Assembly (NCBI GenBank): GCA_025558095.1 | Contig: JAIVFI010000001.1 | Location: 1,426,001-1,490,000 of the forward strand | Direction of reading: 5' to 3' | DNA length: 64,000 bases | Source: Hyaloraphidium curvatum SAG 235-1 | Lineage: Eukaryota > Fungi > Monoblepharomycota | Shown: positions 3,001 to 23,483 of the stretch, in pieces | Layout of the letters: each line of letters begins with the position of its first letter | How positions within the stretch are numbered: the first letter of the stretch is position 1 | Position numbers and translations under genes: made by a program | Notes under the pieces: generated by a model | The model's database searches: none | Told to the model about the DNA's origin: nothing | What the model saw: the letters and a program-made list of their open reading frames with translations, nothing else

Positions 3001-6000
3001 ACCGGCATCCATTGCTTTGCAGTCTGAACCCACTCGATCGCAGGTCCCAGTGGCGCGCAGCTCGAGCATCTCTCGTCAGATGCCTGGTGAGCGCGGCTGT
3101 GAGCGATCTGGCGAAGCGAGGGCAAGAAATGAGGCCTACCGCGGTCTCGCCGGCAATCGAAAGCTCAGGAAGCAAAGACGTGACCCATGCCAACTTCCGG
3201 AACGTGGATGATCCTTCGCGCAGGAGGTCGATGTCGCGCCACGAACTGCTTTTCCAAAGATCATCGAGCTCCGTGCCTTGGACGATCGGAAGGGGGAACT
3301 CGCACTTGAGGACCACGTGGGCGTGCCGGCAGGACGCAGTCGCCGCGGACGTGTCGATGGTCCTGGCAATCTCGTAGTCCACGTTTTGTCGCTCCCCTTG
3401 CAGATGGGCAGGGACAAAGTGCACCGCCTCCGCGGGGACCCACTTGCCCATCACGTGGAGAGGCACGACCTCTGTGCCGGGCTTGTCGTTGGTGCGCCAC
3501 TTTGCGTCGATCTTGGCAACGATTGGGCGGAAGTACTTGAAACCGCCGCGAGAAGAGTCCGTCGAAAACACGAAGGCGTCTTCGTCGAGCGGAGCGGTGG
3601 GCGTAGCGTCGTGGAAGAAGAAGAGCGGCGGCAAACCCCGGTCCTCTGCCGTCTCCTTCTTGCGGTGCAGAGAGTTCTGCGAGGTGCCGCACTTGTCGAG
3701 CAGAACATACGTGCCCGAAATAGGGCGGTCGAGCTCGGCTTCGACAACAGGAGAAGCGGTGACCGCGTACTGGCTCCAACGCTTCGTGTCCTTGAACTCC
3801 GGCATCACGACCCCGAGGCTCGCTTGCCAAGAGTCGACCAACTCCCCCTCGCCAACGAACTCCACGTCGAACTTCTGCTTCGTCGGGAGGCAGATCTCCC
3901 ACTTGCCGCCCGTTAGACTCGAGGTCTCCTTGTCGAGCTTCAGACGAGCCACGGGGTTCTTGAAAAGAGCGCGGAGGTCGTGACCGACGGGCAGATCTTT
4001 GTCCGGCATTCCGAACAGGAGCCATTCCGGCGCCTGCGGCTGCAACCTGAGCTCCAAGCGCCCGTACGGGGACTCGTAGGAAGCAATCCAACACCGGTCC
4101 CGGATCAGCGCGCGGAAGTAGACGGTGGCGCGCTGCATCCGGTGAACCGCGTCAGCCCACATCGTCCAGTCGGCATCCTTGATGGCGCCCTCGCTGCATG
4201 CGGCGCGAAGAGCATCCAGTTCACCAAGTCCGAGCCCGTCAAGCTGGAGGCACATCGGAAGAAGCGACTTGATGCTCTGTTCCACAGATTTGGGCGGCAA
4301 GCGCGACGCAGGAGCCCGCTCGGTCGCGCTGTTCGGGGATTCGGAGGCCTCGGCAACGGCAGAGCTCTGCCGGATCCAATCGGCTTCCGTCAGCTCGGAT
4401 CCGTCAAAGGTGCACGTCAGGTGTTCCGGGCGCCCGCCGCACGACTTGCAAGCCGTGTTGTGGCACGCAACGCACTGCATGACCGTTTCGGCGGCGATCT
4501 TGTCCCCTGCCTCGCACATGCATCGGCGGGAGCTCAGGTTCGCCTGGCGCAGAATGTCCCTGAGCGCAACTTGGGTGGTGCCCGAAAGCGCAAAAGACCC
4601 CCGGTGCAGCGCGTCGTCCTCGACAACATCCGCGGTCGCCCTGCTCTGCTGCTGCTCCGACCCGCCGGGCGTGCCGTCACCAGGATTCAGGAGATCCTTG
4701 CCGAACGAGAGCGCCGACAGCATTGCCGCCGAAATGACGGTCGTAGACATGGCGTTTCCGGCCAGGTCCGCGAGCTGGTCCTCCGTCTCCACCGTCAGGT
4801 GCAGATCCATGTAATCGATTCCCTGGAGCGCGAGGGCCTCGCGACCGGTCGCGGGCCCGCCTCGCGACGTGATGTAGGGGATCATGGACGGCGTGAGGCA
4901 GGGCGACAGGCCAATGTGACCCGAGTGGGTGTTGCGATCGACGTTCTGGGACGCGACGACCCAAAGTCAGGCGACGAATCGGTGCTGCTCATGCAGCCAC
5001 GCACCTGGCTGACGTTCCAGAGGAAAGTCTTGAAGCTGGGATCCGTGAGCTCCGACGTCGCAACCTTGAGGGTGTTGATGTCGAGCAAATCGACGACGCG
5101 CTCCGTCTGCGAGGTGAACCAGTCGTTCCAGGCGAAATCGAGGCCCTTGCAGACGCCGGCTTGGTGCCACGCGGTGAGCGGCCTCTTGTTCCCCAGCATG
5201 TTCTCCTCGCGGTAGCGGGCGTGCCGGGACTCGCACTTGCTCCAGTCGTTCCTGGAGTTCCTGCTCTTGCCCTCGGCGGTCTGCTTGCGGGCGTAGAAGG
5301 CGCGGGCCTTGGCGATGTCGGGGTGGTCGACCGGCAGCAGGTAGCCGTCGATCGGGACGGTCCAACCTCGCTTGAGGCTCTCGACGCGCTCCTTCCACTC
5401 CTCCGAGATGCCCTCGACGCGGCACGCCATGAAGTACCCCCGAGTGCGGGTGTGGGGGATCGAGAACTCCTTCGTGTCGAGCCTGGAAAAGAGGTCGTGA
5501 GAAGAGACTCAACGACGCTCGCTCCAAAGCGAAGCTCACCTGACGTGAGTGCCGAAGTACCCGATCTCGTTGAAGTGCTCCTCGATCGACTTCCCAGCGT
5601 ACTTAGGCTTCTTGCCGGCCTCCTTGGCCTTCTGGATCTTCTCCTGGACGCCCTGCTTGGTCCAGGGGGCACCGCAGACGTTCTCGAGGATGACGATGGG
5701 CGGGAGGTGCTTCTTGACGTAGCGCAGCATGCCGAAGAAGGTCGACCCGGACTCGCCCATCTCCTGGAGGTTCTTCTGCTTGTTGTTGAGGCCGGAGAAG
5801 TCCACGCAAGACGTGCCGGCGACGAGGATCTGCAAGCGAAGGCATGAGAACCAGCCGGCCCGATCGCCCGACGAGACCCACGTCGATGTCGCCGGGCACG
5901 GCGACCAGCGCACCGTACGCCGTGTGCGCCTCGTCCCTCCCGAGCTCCTTCACGTCCCGGAACAGGATCGGCGGCTTGAAGTTGCGCTCGATGTAGGCCT

Positions 6001-8113
6001 GCTTGAAGGGCTCGATCTCGCACGAGAAGACGGATTCGAACTTGAACAAGATCCCGAACTCTTTGAAGAGCGCGTTCTGGATCTTTGTCAGTGCGATGAT
6101 GGGCGCTTCGGTACCCCTGCGAAGCGCGAAGGGAGTCAGCAACCACACATTCACGAAGCAAAGAAGTGCCCACGAGCACATCGTCGCGATCCTCAGAGAC
6201 CTCCCGTTCAGGTGGGCGACGAGCTCCGCGAGGAGTCCCTGCTCCGGCGTCTGCAAAGGAAAGATGAGGCGGCCATCGTCCGGCTCGCACGGGCAACCCA
6301 CGTTCATGCGCTTGACCTGGTCCGAGATGTGCTCCTGCGGCGTCTGGAGCGGAGCGAGGTGCTTGGCGATCTTGCTCTTGTGGGGCGCCCCGCCGTCCTG
6401 GTTCTCGTCCTCGTCCTCCTCGTCGTCGTCCGAGCCCTTCTTGGCCTTCTTCCTGCCGGGCTTGGCCTTGACCGGCTGCTTCTTGGTCGCCTCCTTGGCC
6501 CGCACGTGCAGCCAGTTCGAACCCGAGCCCGAGGCCGAAGCGCGCTCCTCATCCTCGCCCGAGGCCGAATCCTTGTCGGCAGCCCGCTCCTCCCACGCGG
6601 CCTCGACGTCCTCCTCCGACAGGAACTTGACGGGCTTGCCCTTGGGCCGGATGTCGACCTTCTTCCTGTTCACGCCGTTCTCGTCCTCCTCCCCCTCGGA
6701 GCTCTCCTCCTCCTTCTCGGCCTCCTTCTCGGCGCCGGATCCCTCGGCCTCCCCGTTCTCGTCGTCCGAGCTCTTGCGGGCGCGCTTCTTGGCGGGCGCC
6801 TTTTTGCCGGGAGACTTCTTGGCCTTGCCCGCCGCGGCCTTGCCCTTGCCCTTGGAGGAAGGCCCGGGCTTGGGCTCGGAGTCGCCGCCATCGTCCGACT
6901 CGGAGTCGGCGGGGCGCTTGGCCTTGCCCTTGCCCTTCGGGGTGGCCGCCTTGGCCTTGGGCCGCTCCTCCTCCATCTCCGCATCCCCCTCCGATTCCGA
7001 TGCGACGGCAGGGCGCTTCAGCTTGCGGCGAGGCGGTGAGGGCGCCTTTTCCTTGCCCTTGCCCTTGGACTTGCGCTTGCTCTTGGCATCCGAGTCGTCG
7101 TCCTCGGACGCCGGCTCGCTCTCCGCGGAGCTCGACTCGGCCTCCTCCGACGACGAGGACGACGATTCCGAGGGCGAGCCGCTGCCCGCAAAGTCGGACC
7201 CGCTCTCCTCGTCCTCGTCCTCGTCCTCATCCTCCTCGTCCGACGGCGGGTCGACGACCTCGATCTTGTTGCGCTTGGGCTCCGGCTGCTTCTTGGGCGC
7301 GGCCTTGGGCGACGCCTTGCGCTTGCGTGCGGGTGGCGCGGGGGAGTCGTCCTCGTCGGCCGCGGCCGCCTTGCCGGGCTTGCGGACGGGCTTGACGCCC
7401 GACGCCGGCGGTGCTGACTTGGCTTTGGCGGCTGCGAGCGAGCAAGTCGGAGGTTAGCCAGCGACCGCGAAAACCCCAGAGAATCGACCAACCAGGCTTG
7501 GCAGTCCCCACGTCTTCATCTTGCTCGGACGCAGATGCGCCGGCGGGGCTCTTGGGCGAGGCCGCCTTGGGCGAACCGCTGGCGGGCTGGGCCTTGGATT
7601 GCGGCGGCGCCGATGCCGACGCCGGCGCCGCGGCCGGTGCGGGAGATGCCTTGAAGAAGGAGTCGAGCTTCTTCTGGTTGGGGTCGTCCTTCTTCTTGGT
7701 CGAGGCCTGGGCAGGGGGGGCGGGGGAGTCAGCTCGGTTCCACGCGGATCCAAGAGACGAATGCGGCCGGAGGAGGCTCTCCTGCCTCCATTGCAACATC
7801 CTATTGCAGAATAAAGCAGGCTGAGGAGCCTCACCTGGGCAGAGGCTGCGGACTTTCCCTGGGTCTGCTTCGACGGTCCGGTCTTCCCCCCCGCGGCGGG
7901 CGTCTTTGCCGCTGCGGCGCCGTTCCGTGCCTTCGGCGGCGACGACGTGACCACGGTGACCGGCGCAATGTCCTCCTCGAGCATCTCGTCCGCCGAGTCG
8001 ACGACGATGGGGGCCGCTGGGACGGCGGAACCTCCTTTGGCGGTCTTGGGCGGCGGCGCGTCGTCCGCCGCCGGCGCCGCGCCGTCGCGGTCCGGCGACA
8101 AGTGCGTGAGCAT
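1..8113 (-). CDS. DNMT5: DNMT5-family DNA cytosine-5 methyltransferase fused to SNF2 ATPase; multi-exon, 3' end runs off the window
   Basis: MTase motifs LRIATMCS(G)TEAP, FSCEIEPFKQAYIERNF, VAGTSCVDFS, ILENVCGAPW and DLAGNAMS, followed by SNF2 motifs GGVIADQVGYGKT, RLIIDEYTY and RWILSGTPP. GT-AG introns, e.g. 1292-1354 (GTAAGT..CTAAC..GCAG). Start ATG at 8113 is the best guess. Confidence 0.9.
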
Positions 8114-10408: not shown

Positions 10409-13168
10409 CTAGTCGTCCAGGCCCCAGAACCTGAGCCGCTCCTTCAGAGCCTGCTCCTTCTGCGCCTCGGTACGCGCCGCGTCCTCGGCCTCCCGCCGCG
10501 CCGCCGCCTCGGCCTCGTCCTTGGCCGCCAAGATCTTGTCGAAAGCCACGCGGAGCCTGGCGAAGCCCTCCTGGAGCACTTTCGCCAGCTCGGGGTCATG
10601 TCCGGCCTGGTTGGCCTCGTCGGGAGCCGTGGCAAAGCTGGTCCGATCGTCTCCCTCGTCGTCGCTCGATGACGAAGAGTCCGAGCTGTCCTCCGACGGC
10701 GAGCCCGACGATTTGCTGCCGTCAGACCCTGGGCCCCTCCCGCTCTTGGATTCTGAGCCCGAGCCAACTCCCGACGAGGATGAGCGCCGATCCGAGCTCC
10801 GTTGTGTGTCCGACGCAGGCTGTTCGGAGCTATCCGAGTCCTTGTCCGAATCAGCCTCTTCTGAGTCCGCATGCGCCGAGCCCAGGTCAGAGTCCCGAAC
10901 TTGCCCACGTTCCTTGCCGCCGGCGTCCCCGTCGTCACTCTCCGCACTCTCCTCCGCGCCGTCCTGTTTGTCGTCGCCGTCAACGTCCATGCGCTCCTTA
11001 TCCTCCCCCCCGTGCACCTCCCTCCCGAGCCTTCCAAGCGCCTCCTCGTACCACTCACTCAAGCGGTCCCAGCCGTACCCCTTCTTCTTCTTCGGGCGCA
11101 CCCGCTTCACTTTGCCCTCCCTGCCCTCCTTTTCCATGAGCCCAGCAAAATACCCGGTCTCCTTGCCCTGAAGCAGCACGCTCCAGGCCGTCCCCTCCCG
11201 GCCCGCGCGGGCCGTGCGGCCGACCCGGTGAACGTAGGCCTTCAGGTCCCCCGGCGGATCGTAGTTGACCACGTGGCGCACCGATGCTCCGAGGTCCAGG
11301 CCGCGCGAAGCGAGGTCCGTGCACACCAGCACCGCGAGGTCGCCCGAGACAAACGAACGGAGGTGCGACTTCCTCTCCTGCGCCGTAAGCGCCGAGGACA
11401 GGAACGCCGCCTTGATCGGCGGATCCGGCGGCTCATCGCCTGATTCGGCGACCAGCTCGCCGACGAGCTTGAACAGCCGCGCCAGCCTCCCTGCCGCCTC
11501 CACGCTCCGCGTGAACACGAGCAATCCCCTCAGCCCCTCGTTGAACGCGAGGTGAAGTACCACGAGCGGCTTATCCCCCGCGCCGTCCACGTGCACCGCC
11601 TTCTCCTTGAGCGTGGCGGGCAGCGCGTACCGCGACCGCGGGCCGTCGCCTTCGGCCTCGGGCTGCACGTCCTCCGCGTCCGCGGGCATCGCGTCGCCCC
11701 TCACGCTGACCAGCACCGGGTCCTTGAGGTTCAGCGGGGCCAGCTTGGCGGGGTTGCGAGTGAGCGTGGCCGAGCAGAGGATCTTCTGCAGCGGGGTGAT
11801 GGGGAACTGGATCGCAGGGCGCATGTGCAGGTCGGGATCCCAGGTCAGGTCGCGGCGCACGGTGACGGCGGTGTGTTTGGGCAGTTCCGGCCAGACGGGG
11901 TCCGTGCGGATGCCGAAATCGGACCAGGTCAGGGGGCGGCCCGACTTAACCGCGGCGGCGAGGCGGTCCATGTTGGCGCGGTGGATGCGGTCGCCCTCCT
12001 TCTCGGCCGAATCGAGCACGCGGTCCAGCCAGCCGCGGAATTCGTCCTTCAGAAGGCCGTCAGCTTCGTCGATGATGAGGAAGCGGAGGTGCTGCAGCGT
12101 GAACCCGGGCGTCTTGTCCAGGTGCTCGAGCAGCCGTCCGGGGGTCGCCACGAGAATGTCTACTAGGTCGTACCCCTCTTCGACGTCGGTGAGTTTGACG
12201 CCTTCGGCTTCCAAGCTCCGTCCCGAACCCGAAGTCGCCAATCCGACCCGCAGGCCCGTCCCACGGGCGAAGCGCTCAAACTCGTCCCGCACCTGCCTTG
12301 CCAGCTCCCGCGTCGGAAGCACCGCAAGGCACCTGATCCTCGGAATCTTCCTGTGCATAAGGTTGGAGATGACTGGGAGCACGTACGCGAGGGTTTTGCC
12401 GCTCCCCGTTGGGGCAGAGATGAGCACGTCCTTGGGGCCCAAAATCGTGTTCTCGAGGATGTGTGGCAGGGCCACGGCCTGCACGGGGAACAAGGATGGA
12501 ATGTGCTTGTACTTGTTCAAGAGCGCAACAAAGGCCGGATCCAGGGAGAGGGAGGGATCCGAATACGGCGTAGGCACGATGTCCGACGGGATCCAAATCG
12601 GGTTGGCGAGGAAAGCAGGGAGCCCGATGGAGCTGTCCGAACGGCGTTTCCGGCGCTTCTTCTTCTTCGCCGGGCGTGAGCCGCCAGGTTTCCCTGTATC
12701 TGCTTTGCCTGGTGCCTCGTCTGCCGACGCGTCCACATCGGAGCCGTCGCTCTCGGCATCCTCGTTCTCTTCGCTTCCCGACGGACGCCCGCCTTCGGCT
12801 CTTTCATCTGAAGATTCAGACGATGAAGACAACGAAGCCGAAGGTTTTGAAGCCTTTGCGGCCCCGTTGGCGTCCATGTCCTCATCGCTCTCCTCCGCGA
12901 CCCGGGCCGCTTTGCCAGGCTGCACGATCTCCTCGTCGTCCTCATCGTCCGAATTGAACACCCTCTTCTTGCCGGTCGACAGCACAATCGCTTTCGGAGC
13001 CAGAATCCGCTCCCCTCGCGCCAGCACGGCCGGAGATACCCCGTGCACTCGGCCCCGGCTTGGAGCCGACGCGTCGACGGGGTGTTGGTTGCCCCGGCCA
13101 CGGGAGCGCCCGCGTCCGGGTGTCCCGCGACCGTCTGCAGCCTCGTAGCCGCTGTTTGCGCCCTTCAT
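10409..13168 (-). CDS. DBP6: DEAD-box RNA helicase Dbp6/DDX51-like, intronless
   Basis: LFPVQ (Q motif), APTGSGKTLAY, PTRELA, TPGRL, DEAD, SATLTRNP, TDLASRGLD and YVHRVGRTARAG. Confidence 0.88.
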   Translation of the reverse strand: MKGANSGYEAADGRGTPGRGRSRGRGNQHPVDASAPSRGRVHGVSPAVLARGERILAPKAIVLSTGKKRVFNSDDEDDEEIVQPGKAARVAEESDEDMDANGAAKASKPSASLSSSSESSDERAEGGRPSGSEENEDAESDGSDVDASADEAPGKADTGKPGGSRPAKKKKRRKRRSDSSIGLPAFLANPIWIPSDIVPTPYSDPSLSLDPAFVALLNKYKHIPSLFPVQAVALPHILENTILGPKDVLISAPTGSGKTLAYVLPVISNLMHRKIPRIRCLAVLPTRELARQVRDEFERFARGTGLRVGLATSGSGRSLEAEGVKLTDVEEGYDLVDILVATPGRLLEHLDKTPGFTLQHLRFLIIDEADGLLKDEFRGWLDRVLDSAEKEGDRIHRANMDRLAAAVKSGRPLTWSDFGIRTDPVWPELPKHTAVTVRRDLTWDPDLHMRPAIQFPITPLQKILCSATLTRNPAKLAPLNLKDPVLVSVRGDAMPADAEDVQPEAEGDGPRSRYALPATLKEKAVHVDGAGDKPLVVLHLAFNEGLRGLLVFTRSVEAAGRLARLFKLVGELVAESGDEPPDPPIKAAFLSSALTAQERKSHLRSFVSGDLAVLVCTDLASRGLDLGASVRHVVNYDPPGDLKAYVHRVGRTARAGREGTAWSVLLQGKETGYFAGLMEKEGREGKVKRVRPKKKKGYGWDRLSEWYEEALGRLGREVHGGEDKERMDVDGDDKQDGAEESAESDDGDAGGKERGQVRDSDLGSAHADSEEADSDKDSDSSEQPASDTQRSSDRRSSSSGVGSGSESKSGRGPGSDGSKSSGSPSEDSSDSSSSSDDEGDDRTSFATAPDEANQAGHDPELAKVLQEGFARLRVAFDKILAAKDEAEAAARREAEDAARTEAQKEQALKERLRFWGLDD

Positions 13169-13351
13169 TTGGCGCCAAACAACCCCCCACGAGCCCCCCA
13201 GGCGGAAATGGAGCCGTTGTTTACACCTCTTAGACGCCGGCGTCGCGCGCGCCGCGCGGAGCGATCACGATCGCGGGAGCCGTTAGTACCGTTTACAGAA
13301 TGAAGCGTGTAATGAGGAGCTAGCAATCCCACCGTACACTTAGAAATCCCC

Positions 13352-16300
13352 CTACGCCCCAAGAATCAGCTCCTCATCTACATTCAAACCAAAAGCGACC
13401 GGCGCGGGGGCCGGAGCGTTGACAGCGGCGGCTTCGGTGCACAGCTGAAGCCAGTGTTGGAGTTGGGCCGCGACGCCAAGAGCCCAGGCCACCGCGATCC
13501 GTTCGCGGAAGCGCCGCACAAAACGAGAGTAAAGGCCATCGAGGTCCACGGGCTGCCCATCGCGGCCGACGATCCCGGGATACTGGATGCGCCCCATCTC
13601 CGAGGAGAAGCGCGAGAAAGTGGCAGAGACAGCGCTGTACGAATCAAAAGCAAGCACGATCAGAGGGTAGAAGTTGGCGTTGAAGGCGAAACGGGAGTAG
13701 TCCTTCCTGGCGGCCTCGACCCGCCGTTCGACTGCGTGGCCCGGGACCGAGAAGACCAGGCCCGTGTGCAAATGGGCCATAGAGGTGAGGGTCTTGATCT
13801 CGAGCAACCACCGTTTCCGGGTTTCGCGGTGCGTGATGAGAATGTCGCCAAGGCGGCCAGCATCCGCAGGCGTGGGCGGGGTGACAGTCTCGTAGCCATG
13901 CGCAAGGAGGTTTGGCGGCATGGGGTGCACGCGGAGGAGCGGGATGGAGCGAAGCGCCGCGCGGATGGCCGCGCAAATGTCGTCGTGACCAGGACTGAAG
14001 AGATCCCGGCCATAGCAGCCCGAGAACGCGTGCTCCCCCGTCAGCGACATGGCCGATCGCTTGCAGCCCCGCCGGCAGGGCAAGGAAAGACCAGGGTAGT
14101 CGGCCTCGTGCAGGAGCGGGAGGCAAAGCCGGAAGCGTACAAGTAAGCGGAAAAAGTTGTTGCGAATGTGGTTGGCAAGCAGCGCGGGAGAGGCAGTCAG
14201 GAAAGCCGACAGGCCGTCCTGCGCCTGGACGAGCCGCTTGCGGCGCTCCAGACCAGCGGAAGTGTCGGGTTGCAAGGCAATCAGAGCCGCGAGGCGGCGC
14301 TGGTCCTCGAGACGCGTAAGGTCGCTCTGCAGGCCGTGCCAGACCGGCTGAGCGAAGAAACTGGCGTCCGCAGGGAGCGTACGGCGGGCGGGCGCGGCGC
14401 CCACCGGTTGCCCAGCACGCGCAGCCTCGGCGTACGCTGCGGCCGTGTCATCCTCGACACGCTCAAAGGCGGGGCGGAGGGCCTCGATGACGGGAACCAG
14501 TTCCCGCACGTGCTCCACGCCCACACCCCGGGCCGAGGTTCGAAGACCAAGCATGGCGTCCAAGGGGCCCGCCGTGAGGTTGAGTGAAGACAGGTAAGCC
14601 GCCGAGGCCACCTTCTCCGATGACAGAAGCCCCATCCCCGAGTAGTGCAGACCCAAGAATACCTGCTCCCGCACAGTCCGACCCTCCACCGACAGCGGAT
14701 CCAGATCCTCGGCCCGATCTCCCAGCAAGCGCAAGAAGGTGGTGAAAAGCGCGTTGTCAAGACGTCGAGCAAAGGGTTGGGTAACCGAGGGGGGGAGAAT
14801 GCGGAGCCAAAACGAGAAGAGCTGGGTCACACAGAGACGGAGGAGGGAGTACAGGCCCTGGAGGGAGGGGATGTCGGCCGGCATGGCGTAGCCGAGCGCG
14901 GCGCGCTCGATTTCATCGAGAAGAGCGGCAATGGAGTCGATCTTGGCCGCGAGGAACGACTCCACATAGGCAGGGGTGCCGACCGGGGCACCTACCACCT
15001 TGAGGCCGCACGAGCGAGCGAAGTCAGGCGAGCCCGGGGCCGACGCCGTGGCATGCACCTCGGGGTCGGCCTCGTGAGGCGGGAAGCCAGCGACGCGGAT
15101 GTTGTGGGCCGCACCGGCCGCGCGCACCCGCTCCAGCACGGCCGGGTTCGTCGAGAGCGAAAGCAGGTAGCTCTTGTCCGGGCGGTGGGTCATGCCGAGG
15201 GAAGAAAGGCCGTCACGCACCTCTCCCAGGACGGCCATGACCGAGTCCAGCGGCCCGACCACGGTGAGGTCGTCGAGGTACCCAAGGATGAGGCAGTCGG
15301 GGTGCCCAGAGCGGATGGGCCGCAGCATGCGGCTCATGGCGCAGGAGAAGATGGCAGACGACAGCGGGTCGCCCTGGATGTTGCCCTCGTACATGGTGAT
15401 CCGGAAAAGGAGCTCCGCCGAGCGCCGGTCGCGGAAGTAGGCGTGGGAAGGGCGCGAGTAAACGAGGTTGTAGTACGGGATAAGCTGAGGCACCTGGCGG
15501 ACCACCTCGCGCGCGAAGAGGCGGCGCAGCGTATTGAAGGCGTTCCTAGAGTCGACCTTCATGACGACGTGGTCGGGGAAGGCCGCCAGCCACGCGTTCA
15601 CCGCGTGGGCGGTCGCCTCCGCGCCCCCGTCCACCCCGTGACCCAGGTCCTCCTGCTGTTGGAGCTTCCTCAGAAGAGCCTTGTGCCGCACGGCCAGGTA
15701 CGAGCCCGCGAGCCGCATGATGCCCTCCATAATGCCAATCGGCCGGAGCCCCCCCTCCGGCTTGAGCAGAGGGACGAGGATTTGATCCGTGAGGAGCGGC
15801 CGGAGCATGGGGGTGTCGAGTCGGCCAGTGCACACGCCGTGCACCATGGCCGCCAGCGGGCGGAGCTTCCGCCGCGTCGCGTCGTTCTCGCAGTTGTGCA
15901 CGATGAAAAGTTTGGCCATGCTGAAACCCGACATGCCGGCCCCCACGCCGTCCTTCTTCCGGCGCAACCGGGCCCAGATGTCCTCCAGGAAAGCCGCGTC
16001 CGTGTAGGCAGGGCAGGGCGCGGGCGCGTTGGGGGGCAGAGACAGCCGACACAGCGGCTCTCCCTCCCGCGGCCCCGGGTACAGCTCCTCCAGTTCCGCC
16101 TGAAGCGTGGGCGTGAAGCCAGCCGGAACGGCCTCCCCCGAGAGGGCCGCGGACGCAGCACCAGGAGCGCCCTTCAAGGCGGCAAGCACGATGGACTTGA
16201 AGAGCTGGTAGTTGAGCGGCCGCAGCCCGTCCCGCCGCGCGCCCCGGTTGACCTGACGGGCGGCGAAGTAGTTCTGCTCGTACATGTAGTCCCCCGACAT

Positions 16301-17263
16301 GACGTAGCCGCCAAACGCAAGGTAGGCGGTGAGAGTGCGGTGCAGGTCGGTTTCCGGTGCCGCCGGGTCCTCGTAGGCCCGTTGGAAAGACTCGCTGGCC
16401 CGGAAGGCGAGCGTGCTCCAGGTGGTGGTCCGGTAGCGGTGCTTCAGCGGCTCCGGCGGCGGCGCCCCCGCGCCCCCGCCCGGCGGCGGATCAGGCCCGG
16501 GACCCCCGGGTGGACCACCGTCGCCCGGGTCGCCCGGATCACCGCCGTTGCCGTGCCCGCCAGCCGCGGCGTTGCCGCCCGGCGCGCCGTCGCCGCCTGG
16601 GGGATCACCGCCGTCCGGGGCGGCACGCGCCGCCGCCGCCGCCGCCGCCAGCGCCGCCCGTTGCGCCTGGCCGTCCTGCGGGGCGTCGGCCGCAACCCGG
16701 GCGGCCGCAAGGGCCGCCATCAGCGCGGGCGCGGGTGGCGAAGCACGGGGAGATGCCGACGATGCCGCTGGTGACGCCGGTCCCTCCGCGCGTCCCGTGG
16801 CAGCCGCCCGCTCGGCACGCACGCGGTCGAGGAACTCGACGAGATCGGGTGGAAGCGAAGCTAAAGAGACGCCGAGTGGCGGGTTAGCTGCGTCCGGGTT
16901 GCACGAGGTGTGCTGTCCAGAAACACCGGCACCAGAGGCGTTTGCGGCGTAGGGACGCCGGCAACCCCCGCACCGCGCTAGCCCCATGGCGCGCAACGCA
17001 TCGGCAGACAGGCGCTGCATCGCCAACCAGTGCTCCGGGCTCCGTGTGACCCGAAGATGACCGTCCCGTTTGTTTTTGTTTGGAGTTGGCTGGAAGCGGC
17101 AACCATCAACCGGGCACGCATGGAGGCCGGGTTCAGCAGGCGCCTCCGCCATCGGCACATCGCCGTTGATGCAAGATTGGTGATGATGAGATAGAGCTCC
17201 GATGTTGGCGAAAGCTGCCGCGCAGCGGTGGCAGCTGTAAGGCAGGAGCGGCGTGCGGCTCAT
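13352..17263 (-). CDS. 1303-aa retrotransposon protein: N-terminal zinc fingers, reverse transcriptase, Cys/His knuckle, restriction-like endonuclease
   Basis: CHRC..HHHQSC and CPVDGC..H; RT motifs LRPIGIMEGIMRL, GHGVDGGAEATAH, KVDSRNAFN, QGDPLS, YLDD and VVGAPVG; CRRGC..EHAFSGC; RLE GHDD..RLGDIL..LLEIK..RKDY. Uninterrupted and intronless. Confidence 0.92.
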   Translation of the reverse strand: MSRTPLLPYSCHRCAAAFANIGALSHHHQSCINGDVPMAEAPAEPGLHACPVDGCRFQPTPNKNKRDGHLRVTRSPEHWLAMQRLSADALRAMGLARCGGCRRPYAANASGAGVSGQHTSCNPDAANPPLGVSLASLPPDLVEFLDRVRAERAAATGRAEGPASPAASSASPRASPPAPALMAALAAARVAADAPQDGQAQRAALAAAAAAARAAPDGGDPPGGDGAPGGNAAAGGHGNGGDPGDPGDGGPPGGPGPDPPPGGGAGAPPPEPLKHRYRTTTWSTLAFRASESFQRAYEDPAAPETDLHRTLTAYLAFGGYVMSGDYMYEQNYFAARQVNRGARRDGLRPLNYQLFKSIVLAALKGAPGAASAALSGEAVPAGFTPTLQAELEELYPGPREGEPLCRLSLPPNAPAPCPAYTDAAFLEDIWARLRRKKDGVGAGMSGFSMAKLFIVHNCENDATRRKLRPLAAMVHGVCTGRLDTPMLRPLLTDQILVPLLKPEGGLRPIGIMEGIMRLAGSYLAVRHKALLRKLQQQEDLGHGVDGGAEATAHAVNAWLAAFPDHVVMKVDSRNAFNTLRRLFAREVVRQVPQLIPYYNLVYSRPSHAYFRDRRSAELLFRITMYEGNIQGDPLSSAIFSCAMSRMLRPIRSGHPDCLILGYLDDLTVVGPLDSVMAVLGEVRDGLSSLGMTHRPDKSYLLSLSTNPAVLERVRAAGAAHNIRVAGFPPHEADPEVHATASAPGSPDFARSCGLKVVGAPVGTPAYVESFLAAKIDSIAALLDEIERAALGYAMPADIPSLQGLYSLLRLCVTQLFSFWLRILPPSVTQPFARRLDNALFTTFLRLLGDRAEDLDPLSVEGRTVREQVFLGLHYSGMGLLSSEKVASAAYLSSLNLTAGPLDAMLGLRTSARGVGVEHVRELVPVIEALRPAFERVEDDTAAAYAEAARAGQPVGAAPARRTLPADASFFAQPVWHGLQSDLTRLEDQRRLAALIALQPDTSAGLERRKRLVQAQDGLSAFLTASPALLANHIRNNFFRLLVRFRLCLPLLHEADYPGLSLPCRRGCKRSAMSLTGEHAFSGCYGRDLFSPGHDDICAAIRAALRSIPLLRVHPMPPNLLAHGYETVTPPTPADAGRLGDILITHRETRKRWLLEIKTLTSMAHLHTGLVFSVPGHAVERRVEAARKDYSRFAFNANFYPLIVLAFDSYSAVSATFSRFSSEMGRIQYPGIVGRDGQPVDLDGLYSRFVRRFRERIAVAWALGVAAQLQHWLQLCTEAAAVNAPAPAPVAFGLNVDEELILGA

Positions 17264-18111
17264 GGCGAATACGGTGGCGGCGGCGATGCCGGTGTCCCGC
17301 CGCCAGGATCAGCTACCGCGGACGGTGCCTTGTCCGACGAGATCTCCCAATCGTCGAGCGCATGTGTCCGCATCCAAACCTCCTGTGACTCGGTCAGGTC
17401 GCCCCCCGCCCTGTGCCAGGCCGCAAGCGCCGACCACGCGTCACCGATAGCATCACGGCCGCCGTCATCGAGGAGCTCGGAACCTGGCCATTCGAGGTGC
17501 GCCGGCGAACCGGGCTCCGTGTGAGCATACCAAGGAGGCAAGGTGCGCGTCGGAGTGGATACTTCCGAGGAGCTCTGCCCCCCCCCGGCCATTGGTGCCG
17601 GCGGCGTGCCGGGGGTTGTGCGGGGCGGCGCAGGCGGCAGCTGCAAGCTCGGCACGGCGGTTGCAGCTGGGGTTTCCCACGGAGGATGGCCTGGGTGCGC
17701 CGAGAGCATGGAAGCGGCCGAAGCCGGGGCATCAGCGATCAAGATCTGCGATGACGAGGAGGGAGATACTTCCGAGCATGCCGCCCCTTTCCCCCCCGCT
17801 GGTGCCGGCAAGCGGGAGGAGCCGCGGGGCGGCGTGGGCAGAGTGTGACCCTCGGCCAAGCTAGGCACGGCATTTGGCCGAGGGGCCCCGGGGGACGCGG
17901 GGTCAATGTCGGAAGTCTCCCCTGCTGCCGCGAACGGCCTCGGAACTCGGTGAGACGTTGTAGATAGTGGTAGTTGGCGTACCGGTGAAGACTGCAAAAC
18001 AGCAAAAGATGGAGGGGCTGACCGCGCCCGGGAGGTATCCGGACGAGCTCGGCGCCGAGAAGAGCAGCCCACTACTCGGCGTTGCCACTTGCTTGGTGGT
18101 GTTTTAGGCAT
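17260..18111 (-). CDS. Hypothetical Pro/Ser-rich ORF upstream of the RT ORF (possible ORF1)
   Basis: 283-aa ORF whose TGA overlaps the RT ATG (ATGA at 17260-17263); Trp/acidic segment near the C-terminus; no recognised domain. Confidence 0.35.
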   Translation of the reverse strand: MPKTPPSKWQRRVVGCSSRRRARPDTSRARSAPPSFAVLQSSPVRQLPLSTTSHRVPRPFAAAGETSDIDPASPGAPRPNAVPSLAEGHTLPTPPRGSSRLPAPAGGKGAACSEVSPSSSSQILIADAPASAASMLSAHPGHPPWETPAATAVPSLQLPPAPPRTTPGTPPAPMAGGGQSSSEVSTPTRTLPPWYAHTEPGSPAHLEWPGSELLDDGGRDAIGDAWSALAAWHRAGGDLTESQEVWMRTHALDDWEISSDKAPSAVADPGGGTPASPPPPYSP

Positions 18112-18385
18112 TCAAGGACGGTGAGCCAGGAGCCGGCAGCAGGGATCCGGTTGACGTGGAGGCGGCCTTGGCCTGGGGGGAGCCGAGCTTGCGAACGGCC
18201 GCCTTGGCCTTCCGTTCCGCTTTGGCGGATTTGACGTCGATTTGCTGATACGGCTTGGCAACCTTGTCCGGGTTTGTCCCTGCCACATCCTCCACGGGAC
18301 GGCCCTTGCCTGCGTGCTTGGGGCCTGGGGCCATCGTAGGATCACCAACCGCGGATGCCCCAGCGGCCTCATCGGCCGTGTGCAT
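18104..18385 (-). CDS. Short basic hypothetical ORF at the 5' end of the retroelement
   Basis: 93 aa, Lys/Ala-rich; overlaps the next ORF start by 8 nt (ATGCCTAA). Confidence 0.25.
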   Translation of the reverse strand: MHTADEAAGASAVGDPTMAPGPKHAGKGRPVEDVAGTNPDKVAKPYQQIDVKSAKAERKAKAAVRKLGSPQAKAASTSTGSLLPAPGSPSLNA

Positions 18386-18484
18386 GTCTTCGCTTGGTGC
18401 CTCCGAGTTCCAGAATGAACGGGAGCCTCTAAGAAACCAACAACTAAGCCAACCACAATACCTCCCGGCATCCTGCTCGTACTA

Positions 18485-18758
18485 CGGCGATTGGTTACGC
18501 CGACTCCGGAGCAATGAACCCTACCTCCATTTGTTTTGGTTCCTGCTCCCGCCCGCCGGGGTCTTCTCAGTATCACTGATCGCCCGGAGAAACCGAGCCC
18601 GCGGATAGATGCCCCGCCCGATCAAAACATCATTGCATAGCTCAGTCGGGATCGGATCGGCCACGACCCTTGCTTTCGAGAGCGAACTCAAGATCGCAAG
18701 AGTTGACCGTTGAGCGGGATCGTCACACACACAGGAGTCGTTGGAGGGCCAAAAGACC
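18485..18758 (-). ncRNA. Candidate Fanzor omegaRNA scaffold
   Basis: Lies directly 3' of the spliced Fanzor stop. Consecutive hairpins at 18658-18709 (with an internal GAG-UUCG-CUC loop), 18617-18650, 18582-18598, 18567-18579, 18508-18549 and 18485-18502. Ends not determined. Confidence 0.55.
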
Positions 18759-21700
18759 CTAGTTGACGATGACACCCGCGCTCGCCGGATCGCGTCCCTC
18801 GAAGTTGGCCCTCCGCGTCGAGTAGAACACGGGAGGCCTGCCTCCGTGGAGGATCTCCGACAAGGCAATGGTGCGGATGTTGGTGGCAGCCATGACGTCC
18901 CTGCGGCCGAAGTGTCAGGAGCTGCGTAACGAGAACCCAAGGCAACGAACCGATTCCAGCACTTGATCAAACAATCCGGATTTCTGCAATCCTTGATCTG
19001 GTAGTGCCCGTTCTTCGGGTGTTGTTTGCCGACCCTTTCCCAGCATGCCGCGCAGATCTGCGACGTCATGTCTTCCTCCACGTCCTCGGTGACCGTGACG
19101 CTGCGGCGGCGCAGGATGCGCTTCAGCCACGCCAGTGCCGACCCTGGCGTCGTTACGCCGCCGCGCATGTTGTGACGGAACCTGGCCTTGCCGAACGCAA
19201 GTATAAGGCGCTCCGCTTCGACGCCGCAGCCCTTGATGACCTTCTCGGCAACGGCTTCCTGCGCGGTGTGCTTGCCGATGTACCGGTCGAACCGAGACCG
19301 CCGGTGGACCTTTGTCCCGTAGAAGCCGACGATCGTGGAGAGGTGCTTGAGACAGTGGTGGATGTACAGCTTGGTGTCCGCGACCGTGGAGGCCTTGGCG
19401 ACGGGCGTGTCGCGCTCGATCTCGAGGATGGACGGGTGCCGCTTCTTGCGCTGGTTTGCTTTCCACGTGTTGTTCTTGTACCGGGCGAGGTGGTAGTACT
19501 CGCCCGCGGAGATGCTGACGGCCTTGCTGTTGCCGTGGTGCTTGTCGTCCCCCGGCGTCGAGAGGCCCGTCGAAACCGTGAGGATGGCTGTGCTGCCGGG
19601 GTCGAGCCCGGCAACGGACATGCCGGGGATCTTGATGTCGGAGAACGACGTGCCGGGCTGCTCCTCTGACGGCTTCCGCACGCGAACCGTGATCGAGGCC
19701 TGCACGGCGTTGGTGGAGAAGGAGTAGTCGAAGTGCCTCGACAGGTTCTTGGCGCCGCCGGTGTTGACCTTCTCCGGCCGGAAGAACATGCGCCACCAGT
19801 GCTCCGGATCCTCGGCTTCCGCGGCGAGGTAGTCGGCCAGCGAGGTGGGCTCCTGGCCGAGCCGCCGCTGCGCCACCTGGAGGAGCTGGTGAAGAGCGAT
19901 GCGGTCGATGAGGATGTGCTTGGCTTCGGTCGAGAAGCGCGGGAGGACGTTGAAAGGCTTCACGAGCTTGTGGTTGTAGGGAAAGTTGCGGAGAGCGAAC
20001 TTCCTCTCGCTCTTGCTTAAGTTCTCCGTCCACTGCACTAGCTTCTTGCGCAGCTCCTCGTGCTCCCGCTGGATGCGGAACAGGACGTCGAAGAACCTCT
20101 GCCAGTGGTACGCTACCCAGTACGCGTTGAGGTAGAGACCCTTGAGCAGGTCGTCGCGCAGTTCGGTGTAGACGTCGCGGCAGATCTCCAGGAGCAGCGG
20201 GTCGGTCGTGACCTTGTCGTAGAGCTCGTTGTTAGGCAGCGTGAAGGGTCGGTTCGTGTTGGCGGGGTGCTCCCTCGGATCCCAGAACTTCAGGCTGTTG
20301 ACAAAGTGGGTCGCGATGGCCGTGGTTTCACCCTTGGTGAGCGTACGGCCCTGGTTTGGTTGCTGGGGGCCAAAACGACCGTGCTTGTGCAGCCGGATGC
20401 GAATCCTGCAGATCGTCCACGCGCGCACCCGATCGTGCAGGTTTTCCTTCACCGAGTTCATGGCAGCCGTCACGTAGCCTTGCGAAGCGGTCCGCATGAT
20501 CTGGCCGAGGCCAATCCGTGAGGTCCGCTTGTAACCATGACGAGCAGCTCGTTTGACGCAGCCCAGCCATTCCGTGTCGCGGAACGTGTTCAGAAGCGGC
20601 ACCAGAGTATCGGCGTGGTCTTCGTCGCCGTCGAGTGGCGCCGCCACGGCGAAGAAGGCGTTCAGGCCGAGGCTCATGTCCAGGTGAGGGTACCGAAGGT
20701 CCCCTCCCAGTAGCCGCAAGTCGCGCACGTACTTGAAGAAGAGGTCCATGAACAGAGACTTTTCGAACGAAAGCTTCGTGAACCGCCCGATGGCATCCTC
20801 GATGACCTCGTAGAGCGTGGCAGCTAGTTCCTCCTCTGGGCTCGCGGGTTCCCGCGCCGTCCGGTCCCCATACCTCAAGAACTTTTGGAATGCCATAACA
20901 ACGGTCCTCTGGGCAGACTGCGGGCCCATGAGCTCGTCCAGCGCCTCCTTGGGCGTGAGCTTCTTCAGATCGTTGATGTTGAACACGCAGGCCCCGGCGG
21001 TAACCTTCGAGTGACCCCTTTGTCCGCAGCCGTTGGCGCTCGTGTGGCACGCAGACATGTAGTGCACGTGCTCCTTGGCCCGGTGCTCAAACGATCCGCA
21101 CTGCGAACAGTACAGAGGCTCTACCCCGCCGTGCGCCGCGCGCGTGTGGCCCAGCGAGCCGCAGTGAACGAGGAAAGGCCGGCAACCGTTGGGCTCCTCT
21201 GCGGAAACGAAGCTATGCTTGTGCTCGAGCACGTGGTCCTCGTACGAGATCAGGGGGAACCACGAGTACAGCACGTTCTCGGACAGGAAGCCATTTGCGA
21301 CCATCTCCCACAGTTCCTCCTTTGAACGCGACGCCCAGATCCTCCCGGTGCACACGAGGGCGTCGCAAGGATGCGCGTGGGCGATGTCGCCATGGTCAAG
21401 CTCGCCACACGTGCCGCAGACCGAGTGGAAATCTTCGTCGTGGTCGAGCGTGTTGAGCGGGTCGCAGTGCGGGCACATGAAAGGCATGCGGGGATCGGGC
21501 CGCTTCAGATGTTCCTTGGCGTTGTGGTAGACGCTCCCGCATGGAAATAACTGGCAGCCGCTCCCGTCGCCGTGACCGGTATCCCAATGATCAGTGTTTC
21601 CGCAAAGCAGGGCGGGGCAACCGGTGGGCACGTTGGCCTGCTCCAGGTGGGCGGAGTACTCCGGCGGCAGGGCCGCCTGTGCGGCGGCGGCGGCGGCATC

Positions 21701-22051
21701 GTAGCCCTTCTTCTTCGGCTTCTTCGGTGGCGGAGGCTCTGCCGCGGCGCCCTCGCCGTCCGACAAGGGAGGAGACCGTGCCCGCTCCTTGCCTTTTGGC
21801 GTTGCCTTGGGCTGCTGCTTCTTTGTTGTTGACTTCTTGGGCACCGACTTCGTTGGCGGCGCGGAGTCCGAGTCGTCCCCCCGGACTCGGAATCGGACGA
21901 CTCGTCGAGCGGAAGCTGTGCCGTGACGTCGATCTCTGTCCTCCTTGGCTATTCCTCGAGCTGGTCGCTTCTTCGCCGGGTCCTTTGACGACCCTTTGCC
22001 CGCATCGCTGTCAGATTCCTTATCCGGAGTCCGTCTCCTCTTGGGCCCCAT
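18759..22051 (-). CDS. Fanzor (Fanzor1-like TnpB-derived RuvC nuclease), about 1080 aa; exons 22051-18951 and 18900-18759
   Basis: FSTNAVQASI; RuvC-I VAGLDPG; ISAGEYY; ILAFG; RuvC-II EEDMTSQ followed by the Zn ribbon CAAC..CRNPDC. After removing intron 18901-18950, RuvC-III reads WNRDVMAATNI..GGRPPVF. NLS-like PKRRR and PPKKPKKK. Confidence 0.9.
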
Positions 22052-22533
22052 GTCACTGCTATTGCAAACAATGTTAGAGCTCGATTGATCCTCGTCGACG
22101 GCCGAGGAAACGGACCTCGATGCGGTGACTTGGGCAGGGGTCGAGGTCGGAGGCAAAGGCGGCTCTAGTCACCAGCGTCCTGGAGGAGGTGCGAAGGAAC
22201 GAGGGCGAGGTCAGCATCGCGCACTTCGCGAACCGTGTACTTGCGGCCCACCTAGACCCGGCTGGTGCAGTGGATGGCCATGCGGCCGGCGAGGCGGACT
22301 CGGACTCGGCACCCGAATGCCATGCCGGCGGAGAGCGAAGCGGGCGCAGACTACCGACGTCTGAAAGAAAGAAGGTCAGCGGCTTCGTCGGAGGCAATCC
22401 CGAGTGGAGCTCACCAACGAGCTGCAGGAATTGTGAATGAGGTTGTGCTGACCACGGGCTCGCCTGGCTCGAGCACGGATCCCCACCGCGAATCCCGTCA
22501 ATCCTTGCACTCCCGGTTTCTTGAGGCCGGCAC

Positions 22534-23335
22534 ATGGCTTTTCCCCTGGCATTGGCCGGTCCTCGGGATTTTCTTTCCATAGACCACTTCATTCGGGTGC
22601 GTTGGGGCGCCCTGGTCTACGATCCCACCGTGCACGGGACTGTGCACAACTTTCTTCAAAACTTTGGCGTCTTCGGCCCCTTGCAGTGGGCCCTCATACC
22701 TTCTCTAGCGGTCTTCAATCCAGCATACAACCCTTTTTGGTGGCTGCCAATGCCTCCCTGGTTCCCCTTGCACGCAATGAATAGGGTGCTCCATGGAAAC
22801 ATCCTGATGGCGCAGCCCGTCGGTCCGGCAGTTAAGAAAATGAATGTGATCAATATGGGGATGAACCATGGAATGCAATCGGGATCCATCGGACGCTACT
22901 TCCAGATCGCCAACGGTGATACAACCAACATGGTCAACAGGGAGTTCCGGGCGCTTGGCAATGCCATCATGAACGGACTGGCGCCCCACATCCTTGCCAT
23001 ATTGCTCATACCTGGACATCAAGGCATGCCCGGGTTTCCGCCTGCACAGGCGGTCATCAAGGTCTTCTGCCAGAACGTCTTCAACGGACCCGCCCTCTGG
23101 CAGTGCGTAAGCAATCATCGATCGAGACCTCTACTACTGACTTCATATCTCGACCAGGACGGTTCAAAACATCGACGCAATACCCATTCTGATGCACTTT
23201 CGGTACCTGAGGATCAAGCCTCTGATCATCTACTTCATCGGCCAGAATTCCGGAACCGCCTTCCCCATGACCACCGGGCTGACGACGCTGACGATCGACG
23301 TGCGCTTCCAGCTCGGCAATTTGGTAGTTGTTTAG
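22534..23335 (+). CDS. Orphan hypothetical protein, about 248 aa, divergent from Fanzor; predicted intron 23103-23157
   Basis: Removing GTGCGT..CTGAC..CCAG keeps the frame open to TAG 23333-23335, with consistent hydrophobic composition in both exons. Confidence 0.5.
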
Positions 23336-23483
23336 CTTATGGTGGAGACAGAGATAGAGCGTCAGAATGATATGCAGTGGTTAGGAATTCAAGGGCCTGC
23401 TTTAGGCAGTGATATAGAACTTCTTTTGGCACAGAGTCCCGGTTGTTTTGAATACACCGTTATCTTTCGGAGGAGCTACGGCA

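Follow-up and report, generated by a model that had tools for sequence, protein, structure and literature searches.

The closest described counterparts of the two genetic elements considered here are the Fanzor protein SpuFz1 (PDB 8gkh; PMC10432273) and the clades of retrotransposons that lack long terminal repeats (non-LTR) and carry a restriction-like endonuclease (RLE), namely R2, CRE, R4, NeSL/Utopia and HERO (PMC4640811). SpuFz1 combines WED, RuvC and TNB domains and the RuvC residues with an N-terminus resembling a nuclear localization signal (NLS); its gene has an intron and sits at a DNA transposon's right end. The RLE clades have a large open reading frame (ORF) with N-terminal zinc fingers, a reverse transcriptase (RT), a CCHC motif and a PD-(D/E)XK nuclease, and are marked by target-site duplications, 5' truncation and a choice of site that is based on sequence. 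These traits recur, the CCHC motif and nuclease as putative ones, at a locus of Hyaloraphidium curvatum SAG 235-1, where a Fanzor1 gene and an RLE retrotransposon stand close together in the same orientation. The window, by which we mean the whole 64,000-nucleotide stretch that was analysed (C1:1426001-1490000; GC ~65%), is part of a genome assembly of 31.9 Mb in 55 contigs; positions without a contig or locus name are those of the window. A preliminary description offered two models for the pair: a composite, RNA-guided retroelement, or a retroelement that had inserted next to the Fanzor guide region. The locus very probably comprises two independent mobile elements, nested by a one-off event, with a 5'-truncated retroelement lying within a Fanzor-bearing DNA transposon, 12 bp from its right end. 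The second model was right in substance, the insertion being within the Fanzor element's right end and not merely next to it.

The following features, in the order in which they are met when the minus strand is read, define the arrangement.

18411-23462, minus strand: main body of the Fanzor DNA element, from its left end to the retroelement insertion point (five other copies align, at 92-99.7% identity)
18428-18434, minus strand: retroelement target motif TCTTAGA, the sole TCT[G/T]AGA in the Fanzor element
18411-18419, minus strand: first copy of the target-site duplication, TTCATTCTG, 9 bp, beginning 8 bp after the target motif
13307-18410, minus strand: 5'-truncated RLE-type non-LTR retrotransposon, equal to nt 1846-6949 of a 6,949-bp family (99.8% identity to other copies)
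13296-13304, minus strand: second copy of the target-site duplication, TTCATTCTG, 9 bp, on the other side of the retroelement
13284-13295, minus strand: final 12 bp of the Fanzor element, TAAACGGTACTA, separated from the main body by the retroelement (same 12 bases in all five intact copies)

The genome was searched by BLAST with positions 13296-18500 for the retroelement and 18400-22600 for the Fanzor element. Five further Fanzor copies (on C7, C31 and C34, and two on C2) and one degraded copy were found, with alignment extending from ~23465 to 18411. In all five, TTCATTCTG is continued without interruption by TAAACGGTACTA, beyond which the flanks are unrelated; in the window, the 12-bp TAAACGGTACTA comes immediately after the second copy of TTCATTCTG and is followed by the promoter of a helicase gene. 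The uninterrupted paralogues are the equivalent of an empty site. That a candidate duplication surrounds the retroelement alone had been seen before, and the 9 bp of TTCATTCTG are indeed present on both sides of it; the block does not end at 13296, as had been thought, since the Fanzor element has its final 12 bp at 13295-13284.

For the retroelement, the search returned at least 36 genome matches at 97-100% identity. In copies that include its 3' end, the match starts no more than a few bases from 13307; in the window, two additional bases, GC, follow at 13306-13305. Copies reaching the 5' end of the window copy all cease to match the query at 18410, a 5' end that is private to the window copy. 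No retroelement lies near any of the five other Fanzor copies, no other retroelement copy among the at least 36 matches adjoins the window's Fanzor family, and no Fanzor signal came from the flanks that were examined, which covered ~6 kb upstream for seven full-length retroelement copies and less for others. Copy number was assessed with the 3' 344 bp only, which gave at least 69 candidate retroelement 3' ends genome-wide, 40 of which were scored as copies. RT copies without this Fanzor, which the preliminary description had held to speak for a chance adjacency, are therefore present elsewhere.

Evidence from sequencing runs consists of contigs drawn from the data of one strain, comprising an RNA-like run (X1) and a separate DNA run of short contigs. 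Because a DNA-run contig bridges the Fanzor–retroelement junction at 18381-18531, the junction is real. Retroelement contigs of X1 leave the window at 18410 and enter the full-length 5' region, while Fanzor contigs leave at 18411 and enter the flank of the C7 copy; none crosses the Fanzor–RT junction, as the read-through transcript proposed earlier as a check would have done, and none skips the retroelement.

All other long copies of the retroelement extend the 5' end of the window copy by ~1.84 kb of common sequence. The complete element, reconstructed from the C27 copy, is 6,949 bp long, and the ORFs of full copies are ORF-A, which starts at nt 14 and has 712 aa, ORF-B (283 aa) and ORF-C (1,303 aa). 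Without the first 1,845 bp, the window copy has no 5' leader and has lost most of ORF-A; its coding capacity is as follows.

18104-18410, minus strand: remnant of ORF-A, the final ~100 of 712 codons, recognised by comparison with full-length copies
17260-18111, minus strand: ORF-B, 283 aa, Pro/Ser-rich, with an 8-nt overlap with ORF-A and a 4-nt overlap with ORF-C
13352-17263, minus strand: ORF-C, 1,303 aa, with N-terminal C2H2-like fingers, RT (YLDD; RVT_1 E 3.5e-10), a CCHC motif and a putative PD-ExK nuclease region

The chain of overlapping ORFs reported previously does end in an RT–RLE protein, ORF-C, with RVT_1, a C-terminal CCHC motif and a putative PD-ExK region; the first ORF of the chain is cut, however, and the retroelement is incomplete. 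Given the missing 5' leader and the loss of most of ORF-A, the window copy is probably inert. The family to which it belongs appears young and evidently recently active, and bears the marks of target-primed reverse transcription: the duplications measure 7-13 bp, many copies are truncated, at 5' points that differ, and the 3' end is common to all. Full-length copies carry 5-31 variable additional bases at the 5' junction.

What determines the site of insertion can be approached by comparing copies with both junctions (loci L019-L046 and the window). The duplicated sequences differ from copy to copy, and their length ranges from 7 to 13 bp. Upstream of the duplication there is order: among the 17 copies with a duplication of at least 7 bp, [CT]T[GT]AGA (background 1.3e-4 per position) is present in 13, and the distance from its end to the duplication is 6-9 bp (mode 8). 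Among full-length copies, 12 of 20 show TGAGA at 14-50 nt ahead of the start codon; a control with the reversed pattern gave none. The target rule that the 13 copies obey consists of a TCTGAGA-like motif, ~8 bp, and then the duplication. At the window insertion site the order is TCTTAGA, a spacer of 8 bp, and TTCATTCTG. There is one TCT[G/T]AGA in the Fanzor element, on the sense strand and 30-36 bp from the end, and there are two in the whole 64-kb window when both strands are counted. The position and strand of the motif account for both the location of the insertion near the Fanzor right end and the co-orientation of the two elements. A fixed spacer combined with a variable duplication length would fit a model in which the priming nick is made at a constant distance from a recognised motif and the second strand is then cut less precisely. 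The rule resembles that of a type IIS enzyme.

Taken together with the structure of the two elements, the rule allows a sequence of events to be proposed. A ~5.07-kb, Fanzor1-bearing, non-autonomous DNA element would first have inserted upstream of the helicase gene. Later, an RNA of the young RLE-type non-LTR family would have integrated by target-primed reverse transcription, its protein having recognised TCTTAGA in the Fanzor right end. A priming nick 8 bp downstream of the motif and a second-strand cut 9 bp beyond (an order of nicks that we infer) would have produced the duplication of TTCATTCTG, and reverse transcription, or joining, would have stopped 1,845 nt before the 5' end of the RNA. 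The Fanzor copy would at the same time have lost its omegaRNA and guide and its right inverted repeat.

A profile of ORF-C and its distant relatives has its best PDB matches in R2 proteins (E 6e-24), with LINE-1 ORF2 next; the nearest sequence relatives of the RT are only ~27% identical. Foldseek, applied to a low-confidence AlphaFold2 model of ORF-C (pLDDT 50), placed R2 proteins on top, followed by restriction enzymes and Hjc resolvases, and a profile of the RLE region searched against PDB by sequence gave no meaningful match. The C-terminus of ORF-C aligns with the CCHC, RH, PD, D/E and K..Y motifs of its relatives and reads GHD, GD, E-I-K and RKDY; where ORF-C has GHD and RKDY, the relatives have mostly RH(D/S/T) and K/RxxY. 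The departure from the usual RLE motifs that had been remarked on is thus visible in alignment with homologues. It had been thought to fit a relaxed reliance of the element on its own nuclease, but the clean 7-13-bp duplications of the family, at a fixed distance from the motif, would instead fit an active, site-selective nuclease. We accept the element as an RLE-type non-LTR retrotransposon, for which the R2 proteins are the nearest solved structures. From R2 and the other RLE clades the family differs in having three overlapping ORFs, of which ORF-A (712 aa) and ORF-B (283 aa) gave no domain match in domain searches; in its target, which is a dispersed 7-bp motif with a cut ~8 bp off and not a multicopy gene; and in reading GHD for RHD and RKDY for KxxKY.

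Some further observations concern the retroelement family as such. Contigs of X1 skip 58 nt (14316-14373) and 52 nt (14592-14643) with GT..AG ends on the plus strand, antisense to the RT–RLE ORF, which suggests a spliced antisense transcript of the family. Several copies (L045:6335-, L046 (rc):6214- and L028:1-200) contain an insertion of a different mobile element, the terminus of which starts TGCGAAGGTACAGGACG; the junction of this element with the retroelement also appears as a loose end in a freshwater metagenome run from 2024 (X3). On C11, retroelement 3' ends at 513129, 524207 and 535286 have a spacing of exactly 11,078 bp, as though the retroelement were part of a tandem segmental repeat.

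The other partner, Fanzor, lies within a long minus-strand ORF (22156-18521) that a profile of 25 homologues identifies as a Fanzor1 homologue. The two exons were handled separately in searches, one at a time. The gene and the sequence that follows it comprise the following parts.

18951-22051, minus strand: exon 1 of the Fanzor1 coding sequence, its start taken as the first ATG (an additional upstream exon is possible)
18901-18950, minus strand: Fanzor intron, 50 nt, GT..AG, placed by an X1 contig with a joint that skips exactly 50 nt (CT..AC ends on the plus strand)
18759-18900, minus strand: exon 2, completing the RuvC-III motif (N-R from exon 1, then D-V-M-A-A-T-N-I) and containing the C-terminus and the stop (18761-18759)
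18411-18758, minus strand: Fanzor 3' non-coding region, 348 nt, a candidate omegaRNA scaffold shortened by the retroelement, assigned by position only

Exon 1 encodes a basic stretch at the N-terminus that resembles an NLS, together with Cys/His clusters, the GLDPG of RuvC-I, and a conserved Glu, E469, shortly before the Zn-ribbon cysteines. It ends in W-N-R, and the protein resumes after the intron with D-V-M-A-A-T-N-I; in the paralogous copies, exon 2 matches positions 581-611 of the Fanzor profile. Membership of the Fanzor family had to be established by profile, because a Pfam search with the whole ORF and a phmmer search of its C-terminal half against PDB gave no match. An exhaustive phmmer search found 262 relatives, and the 25-sequence profile, which includes the window protein, matches SpuFz1 (8gkh), with E 7.5e-54, as well as GtFz1 (3e-44) and PpFz1 (5e-38). 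Within the profile family D293 (in GLDPG) is invariant, and E469, C476 and C498 are nearly so; PF07282 is present in 21 of the 25 members, the window protein alone (E 0.067) falling short of the Pfam threshold. Judged on these matches, the window protein is a genuine Fanzor1. Two annotated proteins of Hyaloraphidium curvatum are 97% identical to it. Its N-terminal half, bearing the Cys/His clusters, is much longer than that of SpuFz1, and its omegaRNA, unlike that of SpuFz1 (PMC10432273), is a candidate only.

The impression that the Fanzor gene is intact needs some revision: the homology stands, but the frame had been read through the 50-nt intron, and the true C-terminus is in exon 2. With the stop at 18761-18759, the non-coding gap before the retroelement is 348 nt and not about 100 nt. 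The insertion leaves the Fanzor coding region intact but divides the right end of the element, 12 bp short of its tip. The Fanzor family is transcribed and spliced, because an X1 contig skips exactly the 50 nt of the intron; the transcripts sampled come from other copies, as shown by base differences and by a loose end identical to the C7 flank. Between the window and C7 copies on the one hand and the C31, C2 and C34 copies on the other, a ~280-bp segment (21727-22005) is not alignable to the corresponding ~300 bp, so that there are two Fanzor subfamilies, distinguished by the exchange of a block near the N-terminus.

The element that carries the gene is ~5.07 kb long. All six copies have TA at both boundaries, and the ends show an inverted match at 17 of 29 positions in a hand alignment, an imperfect inverted repeat. 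The final TA of TAAACGGTACTA could be a duplication made by the element itself. In the 1.3 kb upstream of Fanzor, neither of the two ORFs that were tested (22534-23370, plus strand; 22705-23118, minus strand) has a Pfam match, and no recognisable transposase is present; the earlier remark that no transposase was to be seen is, for the Fanzor element, borne out by Pfam. The carrier has the appearance of a Tc1/mariner-like (IS630) DNA element, which we call non-autonomous because no DDE transposase gene was recognised in it, and it is probably mobilised in trans by transposases of the Tc1/IS630 type. The position of the 348-nt non-coding region, together with the 12 nt split from it, fits an omegaRNA at the right end of the element, and the region is best regarded as a candidate. 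It had been described as structured, but in an intact paralogue it folds no better than shuffled sequences (z = -1.27; 10 of 100 shuffles fold equally well), and it matches no Rfam family. Nor is it better conserved than the coding sequence. Contigs of X1 pass from the 3' non-coding region through the end of the element into the flank of the C7 copy.

Several points weigh against two elements nested by chance. No true empty allele of the locus was seen, the data being from one strain only, and the contigs leave room for a rare Fanzor–RT read-through transcript. There is also a second adjacency: on C5, downstream of a Fanzor locus by ~430 bp and co-oriented with it, a full-length retroelement begins at C5:4887 (its 5' end) and runs off the start of the contig. 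That Fanzor locus (C5:5316-5776, minus strand) belongs to a different family, of ten near-identical copies; others are, for example, at C3:632736, C6:425955 and C7:383713. Two co-oriented adjacencies, in the window and on C5, among at least 69 copies are more than a naive uniform model predicts.

The C5 locus is the main reason to consider an excess, over chance, of encounters between the retroelement family and the right ends of Fanzor elements, whether through a sequence in Fanzor or omegaRNA ends that the retroelement nuclease recognises, or through Fanzor settling beside the retroelement leader, in which case the Fanzor guide would match every full-length retroelement copy. On balance we regard an excess of this kind as unlikely. 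Unlikely too, as an account of the window locus, is a non-random attraction without a functional unit, in which Fanzor right ends serve as motif-bearing landing pads or Fanzor inserts beside retroelement leaders. Of the at least 69 retroelement copies, it would explain the two that directly follow a Fanzor gene on its 3' side, co-oriented, each beside a different Fanzor family. Only one of the six Fanzor copies of the window family has been struck, however, though most carry the motif or a one-base variant. Moreover, the C5 retroelement copy has no TGAGA or TTAGA within 14-50 nt upstream, and so does not fit the route taken by the window copy. The profile search found ~40 Fanzor loci of several families in the genome, and against a background of ~40 loci of several kb each a single chance insertion is unremarkable.

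A composite unit, in which Fanzor is carried by the retroelement or supplies its DNA break and the block moves or functions as one, is very improbable: comparison of the Fanzor paralogues already speaks as its refutation, and it does not pass the test that the preliminary description had set for it. The closeness and co-orientation of Fanzor and the retroelement, the unusual RLE motifs GHD and RKDY, and the second co-oriented adjacency on C5 could all be cited for it. BLAST of both parts against the genome, however, revealed no other locus at which the junction recurs with common outer boundaries; the duplication surrounds the retroelement alone, with the Fanzor terminus beyond it; the retroelement copy is 5'-truncated; and the site is the one that the retroelement's own motif rule predicts. 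A break made by Fanzor was considered separately and rejected: the insertion is inside the element, whereas a cut directed by the guide falls in the flank, and the motif rule already predicts the site. Least credible of all is an assembly chimera, in which the junctions would be artefacts of repeat collapse or joining, for although both elements are multicopy, near-identical and prone to misassembly, an independent DNA-run contig bridges the junction, and an exact duplication of 9 bp, with a 12-bp terminus cut off beyond it, is what a real insertion would leave behind.

Beyond the nested pair lies a gene that belongs to neither element.

10409-13168, minus strand: DEAD-box helicase gene (DBP6 in the preliminary description), with Pfam DEAD and Helicase_C matches; outside both elements

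A helicase transcript contig of the RNA-like run extends to 13234, ~50 bp short of the Fanzor element terminus. Both elements are accordingly in the promoter region of the helicase gene, the stretch concerned being 13234-13295, and the helicase is still represented in the RNA-like run.

A composite of Fanzor and a retrotransposon would have been a new kind of RNA-guided mobile element. The Fanzor1 gene here does lie within a few hundred bases of a LINE-like element, and its carrier, with TA-flanked ends, does look like Tc1/mariner. Dissected base by base, the adjacency in the window reads instead as a secondary, routine nested insertion and not as carriage. This calls for caution: 'Fanzor–LINE associations' (LINE, long interspersed nuclear element) that are based on proximity are not to be read as carriage. 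The two families are of value in their own right. A Fanzor1 family that is expressed and spliced, its six copies mapped and their ends known exactly, is useful for the omegaRNA search; and the RLE family of this early-diverging fungus, evidently active in recent times, offers, with its short, dispersed motif at a fixed distance from the cut, a tractable model for RLE site choice.

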